The position numbers and the translations under genes were made by a program. DNA of 64,000 nucleotides from Pocillopora damicornis (taxonomy: Eukaryota). The notes beneath the pieces are model-generated. The model did no database searches. It worked only from the letters and a program-made list of their open reading frames with translations, and was not told the origin of the DNA. Location: positions 310,001 through 374,000 of the forward strand of contig NW_020844573.1 in NCBI RefSeq assembly GCF_003704095.1, given 5' to 3'. Shown piece by piece: positions 3,101 through 26,727 of the stretch. Within the stretch, counting starts at the first letter, position 1; each line of letters begins with the position of its first letter.

Positions 3101-6100
3101 CCACAGTAACTTACCTTCGTCACAGTTTTTGCCTTTAAATCCAGGTGGGCATTTACATTGATAGCCACCCACAACATTTGTGCACTGGGCGCCATTTTGG
3201 CAAGGCTTATGCACACTGCAAATGTCACCATCTACACAGAAATATAAACAGAAAACAATTAAATTAGAGAGCAATACTTTCACCAAAATATTAATTCAAT
3301 AAACTTCATATGATAAGGTAGCTGACCAAAGTGCTTCTCGATTGAATGTCGTATAACATGAAGTGGTGATTGGTTTTAGTCTTGTCGTGTTGCCTTCACT
3401 GGTTGAGAAGGTAGCCCGCGGAATTTTTTGAACCAATCGAAAAGAATAGTAGAGCAAAACAACTGAATTCCTGAATTACTTTCGAAACTAAATCGAAAAA
3501 TTGTCTTTTCTGGATATGGGCGGAGCGCCATACCTTCAGTACATCCGTAGAACTCCACTCTCATAGAAATGGTTCCATGCCAGCTCTTAGGTTTGATCCG
3601 TATATACTGAGCAATGATTGGTGGATCAACAAACTCAGCTGCTACAGTGTAACGATCGTTGTTTCCTTGGAAGACCTAGGAATTTAAACACACATCGTTT
3701 TTTTGATACTGATTGGACGCGTCATTCCGTGATAAGATTATTTCAAATGGTCAATCTTTTCTATTCTTAACTTTTTTGAGCAGTTTTCAATTGAGCGTTA
3801 AGAAAAGTAATCAGCAGCCGATCGAAACGATGAATCACTCCTTCGTTAGCCAATAAGAATTAAAAGTAAAACTAGGCAAACTGCAAAAAGCGCAGGAAGA
3901 CGCGGGAAGACGCGGATGACCAAGTCGTGATTGGTTTGCGTTTTGCGTAAGCGAAGTAAAGTAAAACAATAGTAATCTCGGACATCTTTCGACATTCAAT
4001 TGAAAATTTCTGTTCGTATTTTCCTATCATAACGAAAAGATGTTTTTCTAGTCTGTTTCTAGCCTAGAATAGTTTTGGAGCGCAAACAAGGGAAGAGGAT
4101 ACCCATACATAAAGAAAATTTTAATACTATTACGAGAAGATTAGAACTAGTTTCTGAATTAATACTGGGTGACCTTTCAAAATTTTTTAGCGATCCAAAG
4201 CCCTTTTTTAAACCTGTTGTTGTCACCATGCTCTCATATCTTTCATACCTAATATCAAACTCACAAAGCCGTAACACAATGTCCTGTGAGATTCGTCACA
4301 CCGCAACAGACATATTCCAAACACGTCAACAACAGCACAGATTTGAGAACGTACCGTAACTATATTATTGAGCTTGTAATCTTTCCACGTCTTTCCATCG
4401 AAGCTGTAGGCCAAAGTGTATGTCTTTACCCACTGGTCAGCGTCCATTCGTCCCTGAGTAGCAACGCGACGTACCTTAGCAACCACGTCAAACTTGGCTT
4501 GAATATATTGGTTACCATCTGCTGTCTTGGCAGACCATGCACCGATTCTTGAACCTGTTTTCTGGAAGTGGAGCCTACCATTATCTGCTCCGTGGTTAGC
4601 ATCGTATTGCGAAGAAGCTTGTAGGGCATCTGGTTTGATACGCCCGCTTTGCATGCCGAGTGCTTCCATGCACAGTGGGGGACTGGGAGGGACAAAGCCT
4701 GATTGTGCAAGAAAATGGCGGGCATTCAATAATTTCATGGGGGAATCTTTTAATCTCAAATAACTGTTGATTTTTCGATCATGTGTTTCATTTGGAAAAT
4801 TAAGCTCTCTAATTGAAACAATTATCAATTCCACGTTGCGCTATCGGAAGCTAGAAACGCCAACTGCCTCACAGCCCTTGGATGGACTTTTTTTTTCCAA
4901 AAATGCCAACATAAAATTTGGAATAATTACCCCTTACCCTGGAGGGTACTGAATCTGGTCGAATATAGAAAAAGAAGTGAAGTAAATTTGGCAGCACGTT
5001 TACTAATAGTTTTTTCATTCAACAGTACCGTGAACTTTAAATTTGGGGTATTGCTTTTTGTCGTGAGAGGAAAACAGAGAACCTTCAGAAGATACCTCAG
5101 AGCAAGGAAAACAGCAGCTTAGATATGACGCCAGGTCAGTAGGGGGAATCAAACGCGGAACAAATGGCAATTCGCCGTCCATGCATCTCTTTAGCGGTAG
5201 ATTCATGCGGTCAGTGATAACTCTGGGAAAAATTTTCAGTTGAGATAACATAACTTTGAGCTAACCTGTTTGACAGCCAAATAATTCAAGTCTCAAGGAG
5301 ATATGTCCTTGGAACGTTTTTGGATGAAGACGAAAGAAACGAGTGTAGATGGGCACTTCCAACTTGTTTTCTTTGATTGTATTCCTGTCAGAGTTCCCTG
5401 TAAAGATCTGAGAAAATGACAAAACAAGCAAAGAGTGACACAAGATTCACAAAAAGCGGGTTCCACATGAAACAAAAATTTCCCTTTTATCGCGACAAAT
5501 CCAAGCGCAACGAAAGGAAAGGTCTTCAAGCTGAAATTAAGAGATCCTCGCAGCTAAGAACACTACTGGAACGAGTAGTTGAAAATAGGACCTGAAAAAA
5601 ATTCAGGCCCGTACGGGATTTGAACCCATGACCTCTGCGATACCGGTGCAGCGCTCTACCAACTGAGCTAACAAGCCAACTGGGAGCTGGTCAATGTGTT
5701 GGGTCCAAATAAACCATCCAAGTAATGAATGATGATTTTAGATATATGAAATTCATATATTTGCACTGCGGTGAATAGATGAAATTAAGAGATCCTCGCA
5801 GCTTCAAGCTGCTAATCGCCGTCTAAGCTGCCGCCCAGAACAAAGGAAAACTTTTCTTGAATTTTAACGTGAGTGGCGAGTTGCAGGAAGAGCAAACTTT
5901 TCCAATTAATGGAGTCACCAAGACTTCAAGAGACCTCCAAGAAAAATAGAACGCTTTGGAGGGAAATTAGATTCCCAAAAATGATTCACTGAACATATTC
6001 CTGCACAAATCTTTACACCTACGCTACCTGACACGATTGGATCATTATTAAATATATTTTTGGGTCAATCTCTCGCTATAACTCCGACAACCATAGCAAA

Positions 6101-9100
6101 AGGTTCAGGCTCACATAAGCGGCACGTTAAACTTACAATTGGACCATTTTCACCGTAGACGTCGTAGAAACCATTATTGAGGCTGTAGGATATCCAGTAT
6201 GACGTCACCCATTGATCATAATCACTTCTACCTTGGGTAAACACCCGTGTTATCTTGACAATCTTTCCGAAGTCGACCTGCGAAGTAAATATAAAGACAG
6301 AAATACAATTTATAATTGAACAAAGAGTAAATCATTTTTCGGTAGGAGATGCATGGGCACAATGGTTAGGGCGCTGAAATTTGGATCGAATGATCTAGGA
6401 GCCGGTAACCTTACCGACCACAGCTATTTGTAAAACATTAAGCTCAAAAACCAGTCCACTGTGCTTGGTTTTCTGATATTTTTGTATATCTGATTTCAAT
6501 CATCTCGACTGTAAATGTGAACATGTCAAACCAAGATAGAATTTTTTGGGACCGATAACAAACGTCAGGTTCGAGAGAGGAGGGCCTAGGTTCGAGCCCT
6601 GACCAGATCACTGAGTTGTATTATTGGGCAATATGACGCCCATCCAGGAACACAGATTAGCACTGTAAGGTGTCCGGACACCTAACAGTACTCGCCCTAG
6701 TTGTTAAGTATTTAGAAAACCGCAAATACTCCAGTGGTATGGGCTACTTGGCTCGTGTGCAAACTTACTCTAAGGAACAGTTCACGGACAAGAGAGAGTC
6801 AAGCATCGGTAAATAGACAACATATACCTGAATCCATTGACCTAAGTCGTTATATTTTGCAGACCAAGCTCCTGTCTTCGCTCCCGAACGTGCCGAATTT
6901 AGTCGCGCACGGATTGGACCATGGTTTCCATCCCACTGGCTGGAGGCCGTGATTGCATCGTCAGGAATGTCACCGCTCTGAAGACCTAGTTCTCCTTCTT
7001 TACATCGAGGGCTAGGCGTAGATGGCGGTGCACCTAAGACAAAAAATGAAAAATACTTAAGTCCATAAATTTTCGAATAATCATCATGCAGGGGTTGGAC
7101 CTTCAGTCTTTCGGCAGTCAGGGGAATGCAAAACGAAAACCGGCTAGTTGCTACAATTTCCAGGTTCGTTTTTAGGTGCGATTGTACGAGCTTACCTTGA
7201 CAGGACTCATCTAGAATCATCTGTAGTTTATCCTTCAAGGCATCAAAGTCATCCACCTGTATAACATACTGATCATCGTTCATAGCAATCTGACGCAACT
7301 CTCGCTGGTTGATACCGTGACCAATACCCACTGCAACGGTTCTGACTCCTTTTTCCTACCAAATTAAATAAGTAAGAATGATGAAAGGGAATATTTCTTG
7401 TTCCCTTCTGATTTTCTATATTGGGTTAACAGAAGCTTTCTATACAGTCATTGTTTTCGGATAGCTATTGTAAATGCTCAAGTAATTGAAGAATAAAATT
7501 GCACGAAATATAATAAATGCATGGTTAATCATAGCGGAATATGAATTATGTCAATTTCACACTTCTTCCTCGTTGATTTTTGAATAGCTATTGCACTGTA
7601 AGATATTTACAATCAGTGCTGGAATAAGTTATATCTGTCAGTTCTTTCTTCGTCATAAAATGTGGTAGAGGAATCCCGAAATAAATTTATTTCATCAGTT
7701 GAGTTAATAACGTAAGTTGGCCACCATAAAGAGCGTTAGCCCTCCGTCGGAGCGAATGGAGGAATCCTTAGTCATGCAGTACTTAACGCGAAATCAAACT
7801 CGGCCAATCATCAGACAAGTGCAATCAACCTTAAAGGTTGAACTTAGTGCAACACAACTGTAATAGCAAGCGTCACATTACTTTCCTTACATGACTGTAC
7901 TAACCTGGAGTGGTTGTAGTACTTCAGGATATGGCTTACTTCCTCGGTTTGTTTTACCATCGGTGAACACAATCAAAATGTTTGCTTTGTCGTTACGATC
8001 TCCTCCGGCGCTAGTGAATAGCTTTTGAGCAGCCATTTCCAAAGCCCTATCAGTGCGAGTCCACTGCCCAGGGTACCTAATTTCCATCACACGTTTCTTA
8101 AGTTCGACCACGTTGTGATATTTTGGGTTTGCTAAGTCAAATTCCAAATTGGAATTAGTACTATAAGTAATTACGCCAAAGTGCGTTGCTTTGGTGGAGA
8201 CTGAGAAGTGAGACATCAAGGACTGGACGAACTCTTTGGCTATTTTGAAGTTGTTTTTACCCACACTGCCTGAGCCATCCAGGATGATGCCAACGTCTAA
8301 GGCCTTGGTACAAGCTAAATTCAATTGCAAAATCAAAACATACTTGAATCAATTTTCTGCCACAGGTGCATGTTACTAATTTAGTTTCATATAAAACTAT
8401 GGTTCCGCCGTCAATTTTTTCAAATGGCAGTCTATAATGTTAAGGCAACTTTCAATTTGATGTCAAGTGTGGATAGGAATTGAAGGCGTTTTCCTTCACT
8501 GCGCTCTGTTGTTGGCTTAGCAAACTCGCGCCACAAATCAGATTGCAACACAAGAGCCAATCACGGCTTTATAACTTGGTTTCTTGCGCTTAAGACATTT
8601 TACATTTATGTAATTAACACCTCATAGCCTCTTTGCGGTTCCTCTAGGTTCGGTTTTACGACACTCCATACGAAAAACACTCTAGACGGAAAATTGCTCG
8701 ATACACTTGGACAATCAAGGAAGTCAATCATAATTTACCCCGTGACAAGCTCACTGCTGGGTAAAAGATAAGTATCTTGTGAAAGCTACGGTTGAGAAAA
8801 TTCATCCTTTGAGAAAAAAAATCTTAATTACTACTCACGTTTGGGACATGGATTCTCAGAACACGCTCCAGTCTCTTCCAACTCTCCAGCGCAACTCTTG
8901 CCGTTGCCTTTTGGTGGGGGATTGGTACACGATCTCTCGCGAACTTTTACTCCTCCACCACAAGACTTAGAGCACTGTGTCCAGCTAGACCACTCGGACC
9001 AGGCCCCATCGACATCACCAGCACCTGATGAAAGATTCTAGTCAATGAATGACAAACACAAAAGTATGACACATGTACCGACATTCTTTTGCTAAGGGGT

Positions 9101-12100
9101 GTATAACATTCACGTACCCCTGGTCAGGATTATGAACAATCTTTTCGACAGCATGAGTTGAGTTGACTTATTTCCCTTACGGTAAATTTGTCATTTCGCT
9201 GCCCATGTGAAGCAGGGTCTCTATTGAAGGTCGAAAATCGCTGCTTGTTACTAACCTTGACAAGATTCCATGAGGATTTGCTTCAAGTTGTTTTTAAGCT
9301 CATCAAAATCGTTTACATGTGTGACGTAGTCAGGGTTTCCCGCAGCGATCATAAGCAGTTCATCGTCACCGATGCTGTTCCCAATTCCCACAGCGACTGT
9401 GCGGACTCCCTTGTTCTAAAACAGAAAAAAAAATGGAACAAGTTCAGCCTTTATTTTCCACTGAACATTTTCACTCACAAGCAATTGGTTTAAACGCATC
9501 AAGTGACCCAAACGCGACGGCTAAAACTGCGGAATATCAGGCGATATTCGCCAATCGATCCTTCCCAGTTTTTAAACTGGGAAGGATCGTTCTTAAGGGT
9601 CTGAAAAGGAGAATTTGTTTGACAGTCAAGAGTTCTTTAGTTGTTGGTCAAATCCCTTATTCTCGTGTCCTTAATGTTTAATTCAGGACTGATATTGTAA
9701 GGAGAAATTAGATGCCAGTCACTCTTAGGGGTTAAAGGGTTGATGTTAATCTTGTCTGTTCTGAATCATCCTGATAGTCCTTTGTGAATAATTTCCTCTT
9801 CCTTAGCATATTTCTATGCAAGCAGGCAATAATTTTAAAGTTTAGTGCATATTTCCTCGTCGCTAACCTGCAGAGGCTTCAAAACATCCACATATGGTGC
9901 ACTCCTGCTACTTGTTTTGCCATCGCTAAGGATCACCAGAACATTTGCGGCATCTGCCCTGTCGCCATCAGCGGCGCTAAAGATCTGATCAGCAGCCATC
10001 TTCAGGGCCAGATCTGTCCTGGTTCCTCCACCAGTATATTTCAGGCCCTTGATGGCTTCCTGCAGCTTGGGAAGGCTGTGGTATTCCGATTTCGCCAGGT
10101 TGAATTCTAATCTGGCTACTGAATTATAAACGATGGCACCGACATGGGTTCCTTGTGGTGATACTGACAAGTGGCCGACAAGATCAGAGAGGAACTTCAA
10201 AGCCTTGGCAAAGTTTCCACTTCCAACGCTGCCTGAAGCATCTATTATCAGGCCAACGTCCAGTGATTTCTTGCAGGCTGTTTAAATGAAATTGACGTAA
10301 AAGAATAGTAACTGATGATGTTCGCACGTTGGTTGCGCATGGCTGTAGCAAGCGCGAGATTCGAGCAGTGATTTGTTTAAGGCCACTTACGATCAGGGCA
10401 CGGATCTTCATTGCATTTCTGATTCTCCTCTGGTTCACCTAGATGATCGCAGCCCTTTCCATTCCCCACAGGGGCAGGGTCGGTACAGGTTCTTTCACGG
10501 GCTCGTGTTCCGCCTCCACAGGTTTTAGTACATTCAGTCCACTCTGACCACAATGAGTAACCACCATTCACATCTTTAGGTTTTACTTTAGAGAAAGAAC
10601 CTCACAATATTAGAATACACCAACTTTTTCTTAAAATACAGGCCTCTCGGAACTCGAGAGAACAATCAGTTGAATTCTTGAAGGAAGCAAACTAAATCAC
10701 TATAGCCTGCCATTGCAAATTTTAAAAAACACTCCACCACAAATGACTGAACCCAGTCAAAGTTAACAAAATTGAACCAGTTAGTTCAATCTGCCAAGAT
10801 GAAATCAAATTTAAATGAAAGCTCATTTAAAATCGAGAATATGTAAGGCTCCCACATTTTAAAATTATAAGCACAACAAAATATTCTCTTTTGACAAGAG
10901 AATTCACTCACAGTCTTTCAACCGATAGATGTAGTTAGTGCTTTGAGTTCCTACGCATTCCATATCCTTGCCTTTATCACAAGGAGGAAATGGCTCTACA
11001 AGTTCCTGGATGCACTTTTTGGGATCAGCTTCACCATATTTGTTAAATGCCGTCTCCCCATTCTCTCCACTCCAGCACTCCCCGTAGAACTGCAACCCAA
11101 ATACTTTCCAACCATTTTCACGGGTTTTATTTGCACAGCGGCAGGCAAGACTGAAAAATAGTCATGTGGAAATGTTATTATCCAATCCCAGTTGCATTAG
11201 CACTGCAAAGGTTTTAATCAGGGGTTGGGCAATAAAGGTTTAAAAGTTGGCCTATCAATTAGTTATCTCATGAGTGCTCAGCTACCATGTGAGTGATCAA
11301 GGGTTCAAGTCCCAGACCCAACTGACAGTCAGGGTCTTAAAATCACTGAGGACAACGTGCTGCCTTTGCTATAACATCCACATGTGGTAAGACATTCTTA
11401 TCTTTTCCAATAAGAAGTATAAAACATAGCCCTGTCTCCTGCATCTTCTCTGCACTGGTTGGCAGAGAATGTTATTAACAACCCTTGCTCTTCTCTCAAA
11501 GAGTAGGGAATGTAGATCCAGTTTCAGTTTGTGGTCTGGCTTTGTTATTGTCCTCATTTAAACCAGCTTTAAAGCTGAACTAGACCAGCCTGTCAAACAT
11601 CCCCAAATAAATAAATCTAAAAAAAGAGAAGCTGAGTTACCTGAGCATTGACTCTTCCCACGCATGCCAATCAATCTGATGACCATCATGGGCATCACTT
11701 GATTTGTCTCTATCGTTCACTAAGAGATCTGGCAGAGTTCTCATCCCTCTCTTGGTATTGTCCTTGAAACAACCAACCTTTTCGAAAGTCCGCTCGCATT
11801 TCGTATGAGGAAGGGCTGCTGTTATGAAGAAGAAATATTAGTAAATTTAGCAAATACTACGACACAAGCATAAAATTTCACTATATAAAGTGAGCCCCCT
11901 TGTCACAAAGACTTTGAGGTCCTATAAATCAATAAAGACAGCCTACATGAGTAACAGATATTCCCCCAGCTCATACTATTAGAAACACATTTGTACCTTC
12001 CTCTGATAGAGTTGTATTCTTTTGGTTTTGGGAAAAATCTCATGGACACTTTTTGCAAGTAATTCAAAGAGTCCATTCTCACGCTTTCTTTTTTTCTCTT

Positions 12101-17664: not shown

Positions 17665-18060
17665 CGCTCTCATCGAAGGGGAACTGAAAATTTTGTGAAG
17701 ATTCAATCTACCCATCCCCTGTAGCGACGTAAACTGAAGCTTAAAAGAGGATAATTGTTATAACACTAGAATAAGCTGGTATATTTAATTCATGTTGCAG
17801 TCTCGTAGAGATAACAAGCTTGATTTACACTCGTGAAAGGTTGTTTGTGTTCAGTCACCTTCATTTGAAATAAGTTTTGTTTTGTCTTCTTTTTATCGTT
17901 AGGACAACGCGTTGGAAAAGTGTTATATGATATCCTCCTGTCGAAGTATTGATTGCTGAATCGATTGTTGGGGAGGCCCTGAAGATAAATACTGACTTTC
18001 GTTAACAGAATATCAACTCTCGCCATAACTTTCTTCAACCTTAATAGACATCTTTGAAAT

Positions 18061-19011
18061 ATGACGACCTTAAACAACACAACAGAAGATTTAGGGAGCT
18101 CAGTGACAATTTCAGAGTCTCCATTTTGCATGCTAAATCCAAAGTGGCAAAACCTGAAGATTTTTTTTATAGCACTGAATATTCCTCTCTCCATCACGGC
18201 GTTTTTGGGCAATCTTCTGGTTATTACTGTACTTTGGAAGGTCCGCAGCTCCATGTGCCTTCATCCTTCCTCAAAGCTTCTGTACAGTTGTCTTGGGTTC
18301 GCTGATCTGTGCACGGGTCTTATTACACAGCCTCTGTTAGTCGCCTTCATATTCTCTCCAAAACACTCCAAAGGTTGTCTCTATCTACAAATCCCGTATG
18401 TCCTCACGAGCACAATTTTACGAGGAGTCTCGGTGCTAACAGTGACTGCGATCAGTGTGGACAGATATTTGGCTTTGGTACTAAGAATGAGATACAGAAC
18501 CATGGTCACACTTACAAGAATACGGACTCTTCTGGCTGTTTTTACCCTTTACACCATCAGCGGTTCAATGTTGTGGCTGTACAAATTTCGCATTGCCGCA
18601 GCCTTGACTGCTGTAACATTATTGTTGTGCTTTTTGACAGCAAGTTTCGCTTACTTGAGAATTTATCTAACCTTACGCAACCACCAAATTCAAGTTCAAA
18701 AACGTGTCTTCCAGCCACGAGAACAAAAATTCCAAATGAATATGGCTTGGTACAGTAGAACAGTGACTAGCGCGTTATGGATACAGTTCACATTACTTTT
18801 TTGCTATCTTCCATTTTCTACAGTCATAGCATTACGTGCAGTCATTGATGTTAGTAATAACCCTCATGCATCGGCGATTGATCTGGCATGGTACATCACA
18901 GGAGTTCTGTTTTTGTCAAACTCATCAATAAACCCGATACTTTACTGCTGGAAGATTAGAGGAGTGAGAGCTGGAGTGAAGGACATAATCAGACAATTTT
19001 GTCGTTTCTGA
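18061..19011 (+). CDS. Single-exon rhodopsin-like (class A) GPCR, 316 aa, cnidarian adenosine/melanocortin-receptor-like orphan type
   Basis: Seven hydrophobic segments, GN in TM1, FAD in TM2, DRY at the end of TM3, CYLP in TM6, NSSINPILY in TM7, and N-glycosylation sequon NNT near the N-terminus. Confidence 0.93.
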   Translation: MTTLNNTTEDLGSSVTISESPFCMLNPKWQNLKIFFIALNIPLSITAFLGNLLVITVLWKVRSSMCLHPSSKLLYSCLGFADLCTGLITQPLLVAFIFSPKHSKGCLYLQIPYVLTSTILRGVSVLTVTAISVDRYLALVLRMRYRTMVTLTRIRTLLAVFTLYTISGSMLWLYKFRIAAALTAVTLLLCFLTASFAYLRIYLTLRNHQIQVQKRVFQPREQKFQMNMAWYSRTVTSALWIQFTLLFCYLPFSTVIALRAVIDVSNNPHASAIDLAWYITGVLFLSNSSINPILYCWKIRGVRAGVKDIIRQFCRF

Positions 19012-19669
19012 AGTTTAAGGGGATAGTTTCCTCAGTTTTAGGCAATAATAGAAGTACTGACTGTCAGTACGACGTAGTAGCTTAAATCTCAGTGAGCTGA
19101 AAGGAAACGAAAAGAAAAAATATATTAAACATTATCGCCACATTTTTTTTATGACAACTCATCATCCAAAAGTAGTTTTTTAAAAACGTTTGCATTAATT
19201 TTAATCATGCTTCGATCTCCTCTGGTATAGCGTCTTTTTAGTAGTCATGGACCTTGTGTCAATAAAGAAAAACTAAGCTTGGTAAAGGAATACAAGGAGG
19301 TCAGCGTAGGAGAGAAAGGATAGAAAAATTCAATAAGTTGTCTTCGTTAAGCGTTCGCTAAAATAAGTCCCTTTTAACATGTTGTGATGTTTTCTTTGTC
19401 GCTGTTTGTCGGTAATAAATTATTCACTTCCAGGAACACGTCGAAAACTTTTGTTCTTCGATAAGAAATTGTCGCCTGTGGTTCCCTTCTCCTATACTGA
19501 GAAAAATGAATTGAAGTGAAATATTCTGATACAGTCTGCGGGTGTAATTAAACAATCGGAACCGTTTGCTAACCCAATACTCCCATGAGCCTTGGTTCAG
19601 ACATGAAAATTAAGGTCGCCTCCCAAGGACTCGCCTCAAACAAACGACAAATGACAGGGAAGACCATTT

Positions 19670-19830
19670 GCATTCGCTCTGATGAAGGGCCAATGATCGA
19701 AACGCCGGCTCTTGAAACCTTTATGGTGGCAAATTTACATTAGCAACTAGGATAAAACAAAATTCTCTGGTAATACCCTCCACTGAGGCAGCACCACAGT
19801 TTATTTGGAAACTTACTCCTTTATTCATTT
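19670..19830 (+). mobile_element. Penelope-associated-type repeat carrying a degenerate minimal hammerhead core
   Basis: CTGATGA-agggc-caat-gatc-GAAAC-GCC at about 19678-19706. Related reverse copies lie at about 7690-7765 and 36330-36410. Confidence 0.55.
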
Positions 19831-20715
19831 ACAAAACTACTTGTCGCCGACTGGTAGGTTAGGTCGCTTCACGCGCTGAAAACGTTCAGACGGTCTGAGA
19901 TCGCAAATAGAAAGCTGCGGATGTCTTCACGAATTTTTCTGTGATATGTTTGCTGTGGTTGATTCCCCAAGAGGAGAGCGTCAGTCTATAGAGGAAAAGA
20001 CGAATGTCAGCTGCGTCTTAGTAGGCAAGCAGGTCCCTATTATTACATGATTATTAGCGCTGCAGGACGCGCGTTTCTCCTCCCGCGGAGAGATCTTAGA
20101 AGAGCCAGAAAGTAGTTACCGGGAGTCTGATGCCTCAATATTACCTGTGTTAAACCCCTTGCAGACTTCTCGCCTACCCGTAAGCTAGCTGCGACTAAAA
20201 TTTTTAGATCATTAAATCATACTTGCGACGACGCAATTCTTTGCGAGACGGAGTGCATATCACCAATTTGACTGTTTGGCGCTTGTGAATAATTAATAAA
20301 GGTCATAATATGCTAATTTATTTTTGATCAATTCAACATAAATTTTCCTATCTCCAAGCTTCAAGGAATAGTTACGCTTACTTAGAAACTGAACATGGTA
20401 CAGACAAAGTTAAATTCGACCCAAATGGTCAGTAAAAATGTCAAGAAGAGTAAAAACTTTTTCCAATCTATACAACGGTGTGTCGCCGAATTTGGCATAT
20501 GTCTGATAGTGACTGGTAGTGACGGGTGACATAAACCTGTATACTTGCATAAAAACCTGACATTAAAACTTTCCTGTTCCTGTGAAAAATACTATCAGAG
20601 CTACGTTGATGTTTCAAAATTATATGTTGCGGCCACAGAATGCGCCTTAAAGCGATAATTTTGAGACACTGAATCATTGTTTCTTTTTTCTTAAGGAGAT
20701 TAAGAACTGAAGTAA

Positions 20716-20777
20716 ACCATGAACAGCTGTTTCGGTCTCATTAGACCTCAATTAGACCTCATCAGCGTAATATCTTC
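20716..20777 (-). ncRNA. Minimal type I hammerhead-ribozyme-like motif
   Basis: Minus strand reads gaagatattacg CTGATGA GGTCT aat(tgaggtctaat)g AGACC GAAAC AGCT GTT catggtttacttc. It has the conserved core, stem II, a short stem III with a palindromic AGCT loop, and an NUH triplet. Confidence 0.6.
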
Positions 20778-20935
20778 AAACAAATAATTCATTCACTGCC
20801 TCTAAAGAGTTTTTTTTTCCCAAAGAGGACTTCGAAACGTGTGGTTGAAAACATTTATTAAAAACGCAAGTCCCGATTACGAACTGGGAAATATTTATCA
20901 GAAGAGAGGCACCCAAAAAAATAGGAAAGACACAA

Positions 20936-21301
20936 NNNNNNNNNNNNNNNNNNNNNNNNNNNNNNNNNNNNNNNNNNNNNNNNNNNNNNNNNNNNNNNNN
21001 NNNNNNNNNNNNNNNNNNNNNNNNNNNNNNNNNNNNNNNNNNNNNNNNNNNNNNNNNNNNNNNNNNNNNNNNNNNNNNNNNNNNNNNNNNNNNNNNNNNN
21101 NNNNNNNNNNNNNNNNNNNNNNNNNNNNNNNNNNNNNNNNNNNNNNNNNNNNNNNNNNNNNNNNNNNNNNNNNNNNNNNNNNNNNNNNNNNNNNNNNNNN
21201 NNNNNNNNNNNNNNNNNNNNNNNNNNNNNNNNNNNNNNNNNNNNNNNNNNNNNNNNNNNNNNNNNNNNNNNNNNNNNNNNNNNNNNNNNNNNNNNNNNNN
21301 N
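20936..21301. other. Assembly gap (366 N)
   Basis: Run of N. Confidence 1.
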
Positions 21302-21550
21302 TATGATAATCATTTATTTTTTCATTTAAAATGTCTATTTTTTGGCATATGCAATACGCCCTACAAACAAAGAGAAAATTATTGTCGTTTATTAATTAAA
21401 AAATAACGGGATATGAAAGGTGATTGTAGGGCTTTTCACAAAGAGTCTCTCTCTTAATTAACAACAGGTAATGTTACATCGCCGAAGTGATCAAACTTGT
21501 TATAAAAAAGGCACTTTGAAGTGGCCTTTATATTTCTCTTTCTTGGTTTC

Positions 21551-22572
21551 TTAAAGGCTGGTATCCACAACTTCCACATCGAACCTAACATCACCTTCTA
21601 ATATTCTAAGCGGTGTCACTTTCGTCGAAGCAGCTCTTTTATCAACCCCTATTTCAATGTTTTCAACTTTCACAGTAGCTCGCCACCTTACAAATGATCG
21701 AGCCAACGCCTGTCGAAACTCTGGTATTCTAAATGCGTATATAATTGGATTTATAAATGCGCTCGAATAGTTGACAAAATTAATAGCCACCAAATATCTC
21801 TGAGGTATGTTGAGATCAGTTAGAATTACTAAGGTGTTTGAAATAATATATGGAAGCCAAGAAAGCAAGGCAAGAATAGAAACAAACAGCAAAGTCGTCG
21901 TCAGACGCTTATTTTGTAAGTCCCTATTTTGATGTTGTGTTCCAGGGACAGTTCCGCGTCGAAATTTTCTCCATATGGCGATGTTACAACCACACATGAT
22001 AGCAATTGATATCGAACCCAAAGTCAACCAATAATAATTATAATGTTCAAGAAAACGAAGGTAGAATGAAAGAAAATAGAGGGCGGTATCAAGGGTGGAA
22101 ATTGTCCACAGCATTAGAATTATAATAAGGTATGTTCGCTTCGTGAGGGATCGGTGTTTAAACGGCCGATATAAGGCGTAAAACCTTCACAGGATATGGA
22201 GGTCGCAGATACTAGTGAAGCTACTGTAGGAACGTTATCAGCAATAACACTGAAAGATTCGAGATAAATGTCCATTGATGCTGTCCATAGGTGGTAACCG
22301 ACCTCGCCAATTCGGTAAATATAAAAAGGAAGAGATACAGCCCCCAACATCAGATCTGCAACCGCCATATTGATGACGAGAAACAGACTTTTCTTGCGAA
22401 GTCTCTTGTTACCAACAAAGAGAACGATAGTGGGTATGTTTCCAATGACAATCAAGGCAGATGCCAGTACAAGAACACTGCACCAAACGATACTTTCAGC
22501 TTTAGAAGGAATATCACCTGATAACCCAGATCCGTTGTCTCTGCTGATGTTCACTGCTGTTGTTTTATTCAT
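21551..22572 (-). pseudogene. Class A GPCR paralogous to 24367-25347, frameshifted by a 1-nt deletion at the ERF (DRY-equivalent) motif; pseudogene or sequence error
   Basis: ORFs 22120-22572 (TM1-3) and 21551-22114 (TM4-7, NPIIY) join into one receptor if a base is restored near 22185. This copy reads TGT GAA GG TTT TAC where the paralog reads TGT GAG AGG TTT TAC. Confidence 0.82.
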
Positions 22573-22845
22573 CGCTGACTTTTGTCAGAATGTATGTAAC
22601 CGTTTTAGTTTCAAAGAGAGGTAGAGGATAGCTCAGCGTTGATAAGGATGGATCGCGGTCGAAGTCAAACTGCGGATATTTCGGTAAGCCTTTTATTTCC
22701 TTAAAAAGCATTTAAGCTTCAGCTTTAGCGGAATCGATATTCCCCTGGATTGTTCTGAAATTCTAGAACGGATGTTAAACATGTCAATTGCAATTGTTTT
22801 TCATAAATTTTTGAGCTTCAGCTTCAGCAGAACCAGTACTCCATT

Positions 22846-23380
22846 GGATTGTTCTGAAAGTTTAGAACGGATGTCAAATATGTCAAATATGTCAATTAAA
22901 CATTGTTTATTGCTACGTGCCCGAAGGACTTCAGAAATTTATCTGCGTAGCCTTTAAGGTGTCAGAAAAGTTCTCCTCTGATGGTTTTTTTTTTAGCTAG
23001 CACATGCCTGAAAGACTAGTTAAAATCATTAACTTTGAATTTTAAGAAAGAATTATTAGGCTAAACAAATTTTGATGGCAAGTTTTCATATGTGAAGATT
23101 GTTGGATGACCTAAGTTGTTTGCTTTCTGCCGCATTAATATTCTTACACTTCCTCGGTCAAATAATTTTGTGAATTCTGGTGAGTCTACAACTTCCGCGT
23201 TCGTTATGAGCTGAAAAAACAATTTTCACAGCCAGGAAAAGGTCAGAGCGAAAATTATAAAATATAGATATAGCAGATGTACCAAAAATTTATGTTCAAA
23301 CTGTTTCACGTTCTCGGTTACATGAAGCACAGTAACAATTCAACATAGGGAAGGAGACTCCAGTAGATTATCTCCAGTTT
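22846..23380. repeat. Second copy of the 17144-17664 block, bracketed by ~40-bp direct repeats
   Basis: Colinear similarity with the 17-kb copy. The motif tt(a/g)agcttca(g/a)ctt.agc.gaa.c....tggatt occurs at about 22711, 22811 and 23389. Confidence 0.75.
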
Positions 23381-24366
23381 ATAACATTTTAAGCTTCAAC
23401 TTTAGCGGAACCAATACCCCCATGGATTAGACGTTCTCCTTCCAATAGGCACCCCTCTTTTCGGCCGAAATTTTAAATATGATTCTGAACTTGAATTTTA
23501 GTTTGTTTACTTCGGTGGGTTAAGGGGATAGTTCATCTTTCACTGTATATCGATATCCTTAGCATATTTCACATATATTTTGCACTTCTTTGGTAAATTT
23601 CACTTCATTTGTTAATCATTTTTCTAATTCATTGCCTTGTATGCATTTCATATACAGGCCTTTGGCTCAGGTCGCAGAGAAAAGCACCATCCAAGGTTGA
23701 TGACTTACGGTATACGTTGATTCTCATGTTGTATTTTGGCTATTTATTATTCAGACATGTCTTACAGACGTTGTCAACCGATGTGTTCGTTGATTACTTA
23801 GGCAATTGAAAATATCTCACTGATTTTCACTACGAAGTATAAAAGCCCTAATCAAGAAACATAACAAGGATTGAAAAAGCCATGTGAGATTTATATTTTA
23901 TAAGTCATAGGAGCGTGCTATAGTTAAGTTTTGATTCCTTCTCCATTCGCGAATCTTTATGATTCACATGATAAGAGATGATAATCTCTGTAAGAGTTGA
24001 CGCTGACCCGAAATAACTGCGGGCCTTACTCAGCATAGGCAGCTGCTAGTAGCCAAAGTTCTTAGAAGCGCCAGTATACCAACGAGCTCGATCAGCAATC
24101 GAAAAAGCTGGCTCTTTAAAATGAGTATGCTACTCCACTATTTTTTCCGTGAATTAAATTCACCTTACGAAAAAAAGGCACAAAATAAAATGAGGTTTGT
24201 TAATCATGGTCAGATTCTCTAGATAAGCCTTTCTCTGATCTCTTAAGAACTCATGCACACGGTTAGATTACAAAGCACTGAGGCAATTTTAAAATGACTT
24301 ATTTAAAGAGAATATATAGCTTATATTCTCTTGCACATTTTAACTCTGTTTTTAATTTTTGGTTGA

Positions 24367-25347
24367 TCACACTTTGGTTTCCATAATTTCCTCATTCTTC
24401 AGTGGTTGCAGGTCACGTCCAGGCTCAGTTTGTAACGTTATAAGTGATATCGGCGCCCTTGAGGACGCTTCATCCCCCTGGCCAGTTGCAGAATTTTCGC
24501 TGTTCACCACAGCTCGCTTGACCAAACAGCACCGAGATAAAGCTTGTCGAAACTGTGGTATTCTCAGTGTATACACAGCTGGATTTACAAATGCGTTGGC
24601 ATAATTAACAAAGTCGATTATAACAAGACATCTCCACGACATCATAAAGTTGGAATCTAATAGTAAAATTAAACTGGTAACAATAATATAAGGAAGCCAA
24701 CATAGTAATGCAAGGACAGAAACAAACAATAGAATCTTTGTCAGGCGTTTATTTTGTAAGTCCCTGTTTTGATGTTGCAAGCCTGCGACAATTCCTTGAA
24801 GTTGAAACTTTCTCCAGATAGCGATGTTACAACCGCATATGATAATCGCTGAGGTCGAACCGAGTGACAACAAAATATAGGGAAAAAGTTTTCGCAGGCT
24901 GGACATTTGAAATATGCAAGTATTAAGGAGAGCTAAAGTCCAGACTATGAAAATTACAATATAGTATGTTCGAGTCGTTAATGTTCGGTGTTTAAACGGC
25001 CAATATATAGCGTAAAACCTCTCACAAGAAATGAAGGTTGCAGATATTAATGACGCTTTCGTTGCAAGGATATCAGCGATTAAAAAGGGAACATTCAGGT
25101 CCAGAGTTTCAGTCCAAAGCTGATAATCGGATATACCAACCAAGTAAATGTAAAGGGGTAGAGATACAGCTCCCAACATCAGATCAGCAACCGCCATGTT
25201 GATGACAAGAACCAAACTTTTCTTACGAAGTCTTTTGTTTGCTGTAAAGAGGATAATAGTCAATAGATTTCCAATGACAATCAAGGCGGATGCTAATGTA
25301 AAAATACTGCACCAAACGATGCCTTCAGCCTCAGAGGGAAAAGCCAT
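24367..25347 (-). CDS. Single-exon class A GPCR, 326 aa (orphan)
   Basis: GN in TM1, MAVAD in TM2, CERF in TM3, CWLP in TM6, NAFVNPAVY in TM7. High similarity to the neighbouring frameshifted copy. A splice acceptor (tttttcacag) near 25489 suggests an upstream 5'UTR exon. Confidence 0.92.
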   Translation of the reverse strand: MAFPSEAEGIVWCSIFTLASALIVIGNLLTIILFTANKRLRKKSLVLVINMAVADLMLGAVSLPLYIYLVGISDYQLWTETLDLNVPFLIADILATKASLISATFISCERFYAIYWPFKHRTLTTRTYYIVIFIVWTLALLNTCIFQMSSLRKLFPYILLSLGSTSAIIICGCNIAIWRKFQLQGIVAGLQHQNRDLQNKRLTKILLFVSVLALLCWLPYIIVTSLILLLDSNFMMSWRCLVIIDFVNYANAFVNPAVYTLRIPQFRQALSRCCLVKRAVVNSENSATGQGDEASSRAPISLITLQTEPGRDLQPLKNEEIMETKV

Positions 25348-26727
25348 CGATGACCCACACTTATTGATGCTATTGACCGATATGTAATTTCTTGCTGACT
25401 TTGAACAAAACGATGAAAACGATTCACTTCGTTATCTGAAGTGAGCTTGTAAGCTTTGGGTTCACTCAAGACAGAGGGAGGCTTGCACTGTGAAAAATAA
25501 AACAAAATCTTCGTAACTGAAGCACGGTGAAGTTATTCCCTTTGTTGCAACAAAAGCTTCAGTCTATAGACCTTCGCGTATTAAATGGCTGCGACTCCTC
25601 ACAACGCTCGCAATTTAATGATTTTCCCTGTGATAGTATTTTGATTATTTCCTCTCTTTCTCTCTCATTCCGTTTGTTGGCTGGATCCACGACGGCAGAT
25701 TTCCATTCATGCATTCTAAGGTGGATTCCAACTGAAGAGGAGTCATATCGGTTGACTTCGTTCAGCTACATGGTTGCACGATAAAATTATGGAAGAAAAT
25801 GAATTTCTCGTCTCGGGAAGATATAATTTATTTTAAAATATAATTTCTCAATCTTGAAGTTTATTGTATACTCAGATGTTTTACAGGGTCATTCCGAGTC
25901 TTCAGCCATTTGGGAATTATGGATAAATCCCTCCTTCCCGCTCTCTATCTCGGTGTAACAAAACGTGCGTTTCGTGACTCTTAAATATTTTTTAACGAAA
26001 CAGATCATATTAAGTTTCATCGACGGGCTTAGCACAAAGAAGTCATACACTGAACGACGATTTTTTCAGTCTATCAATAAATGAAATTAATTACGCAAAT
26101 ATTTCAACTGATAGAAAGCGTATTGATGAAAAGATATAAGCAACGTTTTGATACAACTTTACAAATAAATTCAAAGTGAGAGAATAAAACCCGTTACCTT
26201 TGTGGACCAAAAAAGTTTCAAACAGTTCCACTGCAAAATAAATAGCACTGAATTCTGAGTCCAATAGATCCATGTGAATAATTAGTTTAATGGCCCAGGT
26301 GTTTTAAAAAAACTGAGTTGAGTAAACATACACTGCTTGGGCCAAATTAAGTGCGATTATACGCTGAGTTTTCATGGATGTACATCAGCTCAAAGATAAA
26401 ATTTTCGTAGATCGAAACTCAGCTATCGCACTACTGCGCTGCAGTGTTTGTTTCACTACACAAAGTTGCTGTTGTTAAAACAGACCTCGAAATTAATTAG
26501 CTATTGATTCACAAAGAACTATTAGAAGCACCGTCATTGTTTTTGTTTGTTCAAATGGAAAAAAATGACGCTTTTTTCGCATTAGTTAACCTTTCAATTG
26601 TTTTAGTTTTTATTTTGAGCTAAAAACGCACGTAATGATGATGTCGAAACGTCAGGTGTTTTCGCCTATTCTTTTCAATTCCTGAATTAATCTCTGAATA
26701 TACATTGATTAATATACAGAAAAAAAT

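Follow-up and report, generated by a model that had tools for sequence, protein, structure and literature searches.

The window analysed here, a 64,000-nucleotide stretch of genomic DNA from the coral Pocillopora damicornis, contains at 5532-5803 a tRNA-cored repeat in which the start of a 248-bp unit recurs after its end, and this raises the question of what template and what machinery could have produced such a permuted copy. A sequence-only reading had proposed a retrozyme-like mobile element copied from circular or multimeric RNA, with the tRNA module in the place of a self-cleaving ribozyme. Our analysis leads us to favour, with moderate confidence, the view that this copy is one of a family of protein-free and ribozyme-free retroelements, derived from tRNA-Thr and inserted by Penelope-type (PLE-type) target-primed reverse transcription.

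Two family copies in the window

The first copy, on the minus strand, consists of a complete 248-bp unit (5556-5803, with unit position 1 at window position 5803 and four positions differing from the family majority), followed by a 24-bp repeat of unit positions 1-24 (5532-5555), which stops at one of the 3' ends of the family, termed A (..CTCTTAATTTCA). The 24-mers at 5532-5555 and 5780-5803 were identical, and perfect 10-bp target-site duplications (TSDs) with the sequence CTTCAAGCTG were located at 5524-5533 and 5802-5811, in full agreement with the monomer, terminal redundancy and direct repeats previously described. Given that the last 2 nt of the left TSD overlap the 3' end of the element and the first 2 nt of the right TSD its 5' end, the inserted DNA measures about 268-272 bp. 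Read along the minus strand, unit positions 1-75 (including ttcaccgcagtgcaaatatatga..ttcatatat) are followed by a linker, the tRNA-like module, a CCTGAA-T5-TTCAGG hairpin, a stretch ending in ..agtagtgttctt, and the first 24 nt again. A near-perfect 19-nt palindrome in the tail (5742-5760, minus strand; unit positions 44-62) is a hot spot in the family for both 5' break points and the inner junctions of inverted pairs. The alternative 3' end of the family, termed B (..CTAAAATCATCAT; unit positions 66-77), is internal to this copy (5727-5738, minus strand), where it was read through.

The tRNA-like module (5605-5677, minus strand) was called as tRNA-Thr(ggt) by ARAGORN and matched the Rfam tRNA model with 57.6 bits. 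The module, which was aligned with genuine tRNA-Thr(TGT) genes, has a pseudo-anticodon GGT and a C at position 33, and both an A box (TAGCTCAGTTGG) and a B box (GGTTCAAATCC) are recognisable. At its 3' border lies the hairpin CCTGAA-TTTTT-TTCAGG (5591-5607, minus strand), which includes a run of seven T, has its 5' stem within the final bases of the tRNA called by ARAGORN and resembles a terminator of Pol III. This T run was found directly 3' of the tRNA in 488 genomic sites, where the hairpin motif is also conserved. Like a classical SINE, the family has a head derived from a tRNA, with the A and B boxes used by Pol III. It departs from the classical layout, in which the element starts at the tRNA head and the path of Pol III to the tail is free of internal terminators, because of this T run and because many copies start in the previous unit.

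A second copy occupies 50217-50430 on the plus strand, between two copies of TCTAACA (50210-50216 and 50431-50437). It is shorter than one unit, running from unit position ~104 to ~77, and is B-ended; its tRNA-Thr-like module (50236-50308, plus strand) was detected by both ARAGORN and Rfam. The copy starts about 27 nt ahead of the tRNA-like part, and the ttcaccgcagtg..ttcatatat segment lies after the tRNA, which bears out the opposite arrangement noted before for 50210-50437. A 23-nt tail motif occurred twice in the window, compared with 0.00 occurrences expected by chance. The permuted junction is not peculiar to one copy, with many genomic copies crossing the same unit junction.

Ends, units and inverted pairs across the genome

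In the 234-Mb coral genome, the family is large, with at least 488 motif matches and 1671 candidate sites. The ends of 114 insertions were placed on the repeated unit. Their 3' ends fell into two narrow zones, A at unit positions 22-27 and B at 66-77, and their 5' ends were spread over the whole unit; hence, the random permutation expected for a circular source did not hold, since the 5' ends alone vary, and neither did a family with both ends fixed. Exact TSDs of 8-16 bp were present at 52 of the 114 insertions, compared with 2 in a shifted control (44 versus 0 for exact TSDs of at least 10 bp), in line with a mobile, non-autonomous element. No target-site motif was found beyond an A/T-rich background. 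The insertion ends lay away from the tRNA, either 51-106 nt upstream of its 5' border or, on the downstream side, 44-69 nt from the 3' border, and none of the mapped insertions ended at a tRNA border.

Copies of more than one unit are frequent, as had been anticipated: 19 of 123 arms in an unbiased sample exceeded 248 nt. The insertions reached 2.1 units, those of more than one unit within a single TSD pair including L001, L018, L027, L030 and L049, and a further TSD-flanked insertion (L066) spanned 4.1 units; no longer array was present among the 114 sampled sites. The unit junction was seamless in all 41 arms that cross it, so that it belongs to the template, as the sequence-only reading had it. 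Derived variants were shared at 2.3% between units within an insertion and at 0.66% between insertions, a difference not reached in any of 2000 shuffles.

Head-to-head inverted pairs made up 53 of the 114 insertions (46%), 36 of them within one TSD pair, while tail-to-tail pairs were absent. Both arms began at canonical ends. Among the 45 classifiable pairs, an A end was combined with a B end in 41, and the two ends were alike in 4 (binomial p = 9e-9), although single arms were evenly divided (A, 28; B, 27); accordingly, in 41 of the 45 pairs, the 51-bp segment at unit positions 25-75 was found at just one of the two ends. Of the B arms, 13 of 41 were no longer than 75 nt, versus 2 of 41 A arms. 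Private variants were common to both arms of a pair (0/1000 shuffles). In coral metagenome contigs, related families showed the same orientation bias (23 head-to-head to 0 tail-to-tail) and also tandems, and a conserved tail module is common to families of several corals.

Template, machinery and rival explanations

The private variants held in common by units and arms of one insertion, together with the seamless junction, imply that the template carries the junction and exceeds one unit. This template is an RNA of more than 248 nt and most likely linear, transcribed by read-through of a multi-unit copy. DNA synthesis starts inside the RNA at A (..TTAATTTCAT) or at B (..AAAATCATCAT), 51 nt apart, and proceeds for a variable length toward the RNA 5' end, often beyond one unit, which yields permuted copies with terminal redundancy such as the one at 5532-5803, each insertion being bounded by a TSD of 8-16 bp. 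About half of the insertions arise when the two nicked ends of the DNA both prime on the same template sequence, which generates head-to-head inverted pairs. The end statistics suggest that, in these pairs, a single RNA molecule is primed at A by one DNA end and at B by the other, and this would account for both the one-sided 51-bp tail and the B arms that often break off close to A. Copying is presumably done by a PLE reverse transcriptase with a GIY-YIG endonuclease, and the tRNA module, with its Pol III boxes and terminator, is probably an inherited SINE-type head rather than a device that excises units.

As hallmarks of PLE insertions, the literature gives truncation at the 5' side, partial tandem copies (pLTR), a neighbouring copy that is inverted and 5'-truncated and, at one end, a tail of 30-40 bp, all reported as unseen in LINE insertions (PMC8557442), and non-autonomous PLE dependants with head-to-tail multicopies are known (PMC8557442; PMC8969392). 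In the coral family, 5' truncation is frequent and the 3' end is fixed; the family also exhibits partial head-to-tail tandems (pseudo-LTR) formed at insertion, the adjacent inverted 5'-truncated copy and a one-end extension, here of 51 bp versus the published 30-40 bp. This architecture is that described for PLEs and their non-autonomous dependants, and upholds the Penelope link drawn earlier.

With regard to an autonomous partner, GIY-YIG matches are present in the coral genome, but no reverse transcriptase or GIY-YIG frame adjoined a tail in about 830 kb covering the window, the loci and the metagenome contigs. The best 150 RVT_1 matches did not coincide with GIY-YIG matches, and a GIY..YIG regular expression gave 0 matches in the partner search. 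ORF and Pfam scans of the loci and 120 metagenome contigs yielded BTB, Frag1, Ig, bZIP and BEL/Pao peptidase matches as well as a single APE LINE, which lies on the wrong strand. One reverse transcriptase-like frame (L096) was discarded as a partner, being devoid of a Pfam match and not contiguous with the element.

Several observations count against a PLE-type reading: no autonomous PLE with the 3' end of the element was found in the ~830 kb, canonical PLEs and animal retrozymes have hammerheads and the 248-bp unit has none, the 51-bp tail is above the 30-40 bp range, and the T run should halt Pol III ahead of the A and B sites. A variant of it, which we consider unlikely, regards the family as a ribozyme-free counterpart of retrozymes, in which the tRNA gene module gives a PLE-dependent element an LTR-like transcription logic. 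The Pol III promoter would lie in the upstream unit and a leaky T7 terminator in the next one, and the template longer than a unit would be a Pol III read-through RNA or a circle formed without a self-cleaving motif. Were this variant true, the A-with-B rule would directly show a PLE ribonucleoprotein engaging the two ends of the target DNA on a single RNA, 51 nt apart, and would provide a concrete answer as to the origin of PLE tandem and inverted insertions and of their 'tails'.

An ordinary tRNA SINE mobilised by a LINE, with tandem-multimer source copies, 5' inversions by twin priming and two recognition sites of a stringent LINE tail, is a rather unlikely explanation, although the intact A and B boxes, the 5' truncation, the variable 8-16 bp TSDs and a tail consisting of a stem-loop and a short A/T-rich end, as in stringent LINE/SINE tails, would all suit it. 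RVT_1-type reverse transcriptases are also plentiful in the genome, one APE-type LINE is present in a related coral contig, and the lack of a PLE partner next to a tail in the ~830 kb favours it as well. In the sequence examined, no LINE 3' end carrying the tail was found. Against this explanation, inverted pairs are a high proportion of the insertions and both of their arms start from canonical ends, whereas in classical twin priming the inverted arm begins at an arbitrary internal point. Moreover, no L1-type target motif is present, the greater likeness of units within than between insertions argues against a few old multimer masters, and the strict A-with-B rule (41 to 4) and frequent partial tandems have been described as PLE-specific and unseen with LINEs (PMC8557442).

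The circle favoured by the sequence-only reading, in which the unit RNA is excised and circularised, with RNase P/Z cleavage at the tRNA replacing the hammerhead, and then copied by rolling-circle reverse transcription, now appears quite improbable. It would explain the templated, seamless junction, the units of one insertion as near-identical copies of one source, and insertions of up to 4.1 units without long genomic arrays; in addition, the RNA of the unit is highly structured (z = -4.8), and coral retrozymes of similar size form circles (PMC7229834). However, Rfam searches of the window and of the two- and four-unit loci, run with the gathering threshold and with E values up to 1, recovered no self-cleaving ribozyme but only the tRNA, as did Rfam on 147 kb of coral contigs; a hammerhead-core regular expression gave three stray matches unrelated to the family. 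RNase P/Z cleavage falls at the tRNA borders and would strip the tRNA from the copied RNA, but the copies keep it intact and have no ends there, so the module does not define the ends and the proposed ribozyme substitute is not supported. RNase P/Z products carry 5'-phosphate and 3'-OH ends. Such ends are unsuitable for RtcB ligase, with which retrozymes circularise (PMC7229834). As for the RNA itself, the summed depth of contigs from random-primed libraries was 10-25 times lower in the linker (5696-5729 of the window) than in the tRNA part, which, as a weak indication drawn from contigs only, speaks against an abundant, even 248-nt species, and no evenly covered circle was seen in these contigs. 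The joint at which RNA contigs go back by 248 was accounted for by copies reading beyond the A end. Copy lengths showed no peak of constant length; the 5' ends clustered at the same template positions for both A and B 3' ends and not at a length of about one full turn.

A satellite of tRNA genes, the fragments of which were scattered at the DNA level by recombination or re-integration of extrachromosomal circles, is extremely improbable and close to refuted. Head-to-tail units of constant period, whose repeated module consists of tRNA genes with their own terminator, would be in keeping with it. Satellites, however, form long homogeneous arrays without TSDs, whereas here TSDs surround single, partial and inverted copies, the longest array among the 114 sites is 4.1 units and TSD-flanked, the 3' ends are fixed and the 5' ends variable, and orientation is strict (53 head-to-head versus 0 tail-to-tail). 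Other candidates were also set aside: a fixed, diverged dimer master (no recurrent unit-specific differences), a DNA transposon or foldback element (variable inner junctions and TSD lengths, ends unlike each other) and, as disfavoured, a de novo template jump at each junction, given that the 41 arms lack raggedness or filler although terminal 3' ends are ragged.

Significance and comparison with known systems

We think it fairly probable that this is a tRNA-derived, ribozyme-free, non-autonomous retroelement with Penelope-type integration. In the literature searched (Repbase and Dfam being outside its scope), no description of a tRNA-headed element with PLE architecture was found. The origin of PLE tandem and inverted insertions and of one-sided tails has been stated as an open question (PMC8557442). 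The coral family offers a very small natural substrate (248 nt), with hundreds of datable copies and all of those PLE features, and sets quantitative constraints on PLE insertion: the two start sites lie 51 nt from each other, A and B are almost always used one per DNA end, and the same template sequence is copied into both arms. The family further suggests that PLE-type machinery is able to carry a tRNA head of the SINE type even where a hammerhead is lacking. If this is true, PLE-dependent 'SINEs' may be hidden among the ordinary tRNA SINEs or the tRNA pseudogenes annotated in corals and other invertebrates.

The family resembles classical tRNA SINEs in its tRNA part with A and B boxes, its body and structured tail, its 5' truncation and its TSDs. 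It differs from them in the strong terminator right after the tRNA, in copies that reach upstream of the tRNA into the tail of the previous unit, and in its two start sites, with about half of the insertions being inverted pairs that follow the A-with-B rule. Animal non-LTR retrozymes (Cervera and de la Pena 2020, PMC7229834; Li et al. 2026 preprint, 10.64898/2026.07.22.740005) also have units of ~170-400 bp, dispersed as monomers, dimers and short tandems with TSDs of more than 4 bp, occur in corals and are thought to use PLE machinery. Nonetheless, they are defined by a type I hammerhead per unit and abundant circular RNA, whereas the 248-bp coral unit has a tRNA gene-like module instead of a ribozyme, and no sign of a circle was found.

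A Pol III gene, with promoter and terminator, inside the repeated part of a non-autonomous retroelement is likewise known from Cassandra, Helenus and Ajax ('TRIMp3'), which carry small-RNA genes in their terminal repeats (Kojima 2024, PMC10886601); with such an arrangement, the upstream repeat could start a transcript and the downstream repeat could end it. Those are, however, true LTR elements with a primer-binding site, a polypurine tract and 4-5 bp integrase TSDs, none of which the coral family has. Finally, MRC1 and other non-autonomous Chlamys elements of Chlamydomonas (Craig et al. 2021, PMC8557442) are PLE dependants from a green alga that have no tRNA module and have a 3' end in common with a known autonomous PLE, while the tRNA-cored family comes from a coral. 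With these elements, the coral family has in common that it is protein-free and 5'-truncated, with pseudo-LTR partial tandems and head-to-tail multicopies, and that it forms complex tandem and inverted insertions with a one-end extension.

The window copies and the family they belong to

Read on the minus strand, the copy at window positions 5532-5803 runs through 24 nt (agctgcgaggatctcttaatttca), a tail segment (ttcaccgcagtgcaaatatatga..ttcatatat), a linker, a 73-nt tRNA-like part, a T7 hairpin, about 30 nt and then the same 24 nt again. The 24-mer was found exactly at both 5532-5555 and 5780-5803, and CTTCAAGCTG flanks the copy exactly at 5524 and 5802. ARAGORN identified a tRNA-Thr(ggt) at 5605-5677 (-) (Rfam tRNA, 57.6 bits) and another at 50236-50308 (+) (Rfam tRNA, 43.6 bits), the latter within a second copy (50217-50430, TCTAACA flanks) which starts just upstream of its own tRNA and carries the tail 3' of it. 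Comparison of the two copies, together with these exact matches, confirmed the permuted order, terminal redundancy and duplications described in the sequence-only reading. Long open frames at 6768-10281 (-) and 17793-25431 appeared, by eye, to be von Willebrand A-domain exons and several seven-helix receptor-like genes; the first copy, probably intronic, has such a frame to either side on the same strand, and contigs of four RNA runs showed no expression of its unique flanks.

A 288-bp query against the 234-Mb, 4393-contig coral assembly yielded 1671 first-look candidates, and a 36-nt pattern covering the 3' part of the tRNA and the hairpin matched 488 sites at three or fewer mismatches, with none for the reversed control. 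We sampled 110 loci, namely the 30 best whole-query matches, which are biased to long copies, and 80 others around listed 0- or 1-mismatch matches of the 36-mer, picked blind to copy structure (the unbiased sample). These were mapped onto a ruler made of five repeats of the first copy's own 248-bp unit (position 1 = window 5803), and 114 insertions, out of more than 1000, were analyzed. Two subfamilies were distinguished: that of the first copy, 90-97% identical to the ruler, and the A-type (hairpin variant GTACAGG), which is 75-89% identical, with a diverged yet homologous tail, and whose ends were classed on the other subfamily's ruler. The RNA runs holding the element were coral or marine metagenomes and transcriptomes, which places the host among the stony corals. 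The family is real, abundant and fairly young.

The tRNA module retains the cloverleaf, the A box and the B box, and can be aligned with two genuine tRNA-Thr(TGT) genes, each with a T5 terminator, beside one insertion. These apparently genuine genes lie 778 bp apart in locus L073 (1511-1583 and 2289-2361 (+)), adjoining the family insertion at 1202-1391; with the tRNA part of the element they share about 72% identity, and genes of this kind are its likely ancestor. Because position 33 is a C and the anticodon is GGT, which eukaryotes are not known to use, the module is a pseudo-tRNA.

Ends, duplications and inverted pairs

The 3' ends of the insertions were confined to two narrow zones with slightly ragged limits, A (unit positions 22-27, ..CTCTTAATTTCA/T) and B (66-77, ..CTAAAATCATCAT), whereas 5' ends fell anywhere in the unit, with pile-ups at 2-5, 32-53, 74-85, 143-173 and 237. 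Since the 5' ends alone are variable, random permutation, which the sequence-only reading had named as a test of its idea, was not supported. An exact shared word of at least 8 nt was present at both ends of 52/114 insertions, compared with 2 when the flanks were shifted by 40 nt, and one of at least 10 nt at 44/114, compared with 0 in the shifted control; duplications were 8-16 bp long, with a median of 12 in inverted pairs. Only a minority of arms exceeded one unit (19/123 in the unbiased sample). Clear, duplication-bounded insertions of this length include the first window copy (275 bp) and those in L018 (335 bp), L030 (303 bp), L049 (270 bp) and L027 (514 bp), and L066 holds a 4.1-unit A-type array with flanks a[g/a]gccccacct. 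Two copies in L078 (38-200 and 1093-1256 (-)) break at identical positions (unit 161 to 76) and have a flank in common (tagagtaaatttc..); rather than separate events, they look like the product of one insertion that was copied along with its surroundings in a local segmental duplication.

Head-to-head pairs, with their 5' ends joined and -10 to +45 nt between them, made up 53/114 insertions, and no tail-to-tail pair was found among them. As 36 of the 53 lie within one pair of duplications, each of these represents a single event. Such pairs combined an A end with a B end in 41 of the 45 that could be classified, the remaining 4 having like ends (binomial p = 9e-9), which makes the tail one-sided; the unbiased sample gave a ratio of 34 to 3, and the rule was true of both subfamilies. 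Single arms used the two zones equally (A 28, B 27). Arms of 75 nt or less accounted for 13/41 B arms and 2/41 A arms (Fisher p = 0.003), and the very short B arms stop between the palindrome at 44-62 and site A. In the inner arm of one inverted pair (L013:1821-1940 (+)) a rare 3' end, neither A nor B, lies at the T7 hairpin (unit ~214-226), as would be expected if the template were Pol III-terminated RNA. At L037:1072-1379, L005:1776-2006 and L069:1238-1445 there are rare variant junctions, where a 3' end of type A or B is directly followed by a copy that starts at unit 102-116, shortly before the tRNA. These are candidate cases of true template jumping to a second RNA.

The template and the tests for a circle

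The unit junction (positions 60-105) is crossed by 41 arms and was seamless in every one, with subfamily-specific indels only and neither filler nor raggedness, and was therefore copied from a template rather than made anew at each insertion. Derived variants were shared at 2.28% of positions within insertions compared with 0.66% between insertions (reached in 0/2000 shuffles), and no unit-specific difference recurred among the units of multi-unit insertions. An old, diverged dimer master is thus ruled out, and the source of each multi-unit insertion had units that were alike. Derived variants were also common to both arms of inverted pairs (2.4% versus 0.6%, and 5.8% versus 1.7%; 0/1000); one and the same template sequence was copied into the two arms.

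With a templated junction and copies longer than one unit, the suggestion of a tandem or circular template was right in substance, but its circular RNA was not supported. On loci of two and four units, where a motif split by permutation would have shown, Rfam matched the unit to tRNA and to nothing else, even with E values up to 1. Family sequences occurred on both strands in contigs from two random-primed and two poly(A) libraries, their summed depth being 10-25x lower at the linker (5696-5729) than at the tRNA part, which speaks weakly against an abundant circle, as contigs can show neither ends nor circles; the single joint that goes back 248 reflects copies reading past site A. Lastly, a circle primed at A or B should give pile-ups at a constant length of about one turn, whereas in the observed pile-ups the two classes shared template positions: at 32-53, A arms measured 226-241 nt and B arms 23-35 and 265-278 nt, and the pattern recurred in A and B arms at 2-5, 143-173 and 237. 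These pile-ups look like structure-dependent stops, and predicted folds contain the 44-62 palindrome and a CTGCG/CGCAG stem around site A (z = -2.8 and -4.8). The template longer than one unit may be either a linear multimer or a circle. Elsewhere in the window, by an assembly gap (~20935-21050), a hammerhead-like core with a duplicated 11-nt loop insert (20729-20790 (-), CTGATGA-GGTCT..AGACC-GAAAC) fell under all Rfam thresholds, and neither repeat structure nor duplication was seen around it.

The T7 hairpin at the 3' border of the tRNA should end Pol III transcripts before A and B. The template may therefore arise by read-through, either of Pol III starting in an upstream unit or of Pol II. 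Some 5' ends cluster at 119-130, a distance of 1-12 nt upstream of the tRNA, which would fit a Pol III start. None of the mapped insertion ends coincided with a cleavage site of RNase P or RNase Z, and the tRNA is intact within the copied RNA; the suggestion that it may act in the role of a ribozyme is therefore not supported.

Related coral elements and comparison with Penelope-type insertion

When metagenome contigs were scanned once with a 19-nt motif from the tail, 120 coral-derived contigs (L111-L230) were recovered, with related families at 71-81% identity. These comprise several SINE-like families that all carry one conserved tail module, CCGCAGTTCAAATATATGAnTTTCATATATTCA, and differ in heads and linkers. 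Head-to-head pairs numbered 23 and tail-to-tail pairs 0, and tandems reached 3.4 units in L180; the insertion behavior is shared by coral elements of a wider group. Very short, tail-only copies (~40 nt) with duplications were seen in L216 and L228. The 5' part of an APE-type LINE with a PHD finger (L130:3-2048 (-)) and a BEL/Pao LTR element (L207:3140-4303 (+)) were also found, neither being contiguous with a family tail. The genome itself contains seven GIY-YIG matches.

Our literature search found no description of a tRNA-headed element with Penelope-like element (PLE) architecture. Cassandra-type elements show that a retroelement can be driven by a Pol III gene located in its terminal repeat (PMC10886601). 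Hammerheads and circular RNA are the defining features of animal retrozymes, the other class of PLE-linked non-autonomous elements (PMC7229834; 10.64898/2026.07.22.740005), whereas the coral unit has no Rfam ribozyme match. Craig and coworkers described features of Penelope-type insertion, namely 5' truncation, partial tandems, an inverted truncated copy alongside and a tail on one side only, which they state are not seen when LINEs insert (PMC8557442; see also PMC8969392), and they reported that non-autonomous elements also make pseudo-LTRs and head-to-tail multicopies (PMC8557442). All four architectural features of PLEs in that description are present in the coral family, which consists of tRNA-derived, ribozyme-free non-autonomous retroelements whose insertions bear the full Penelope-type signature.
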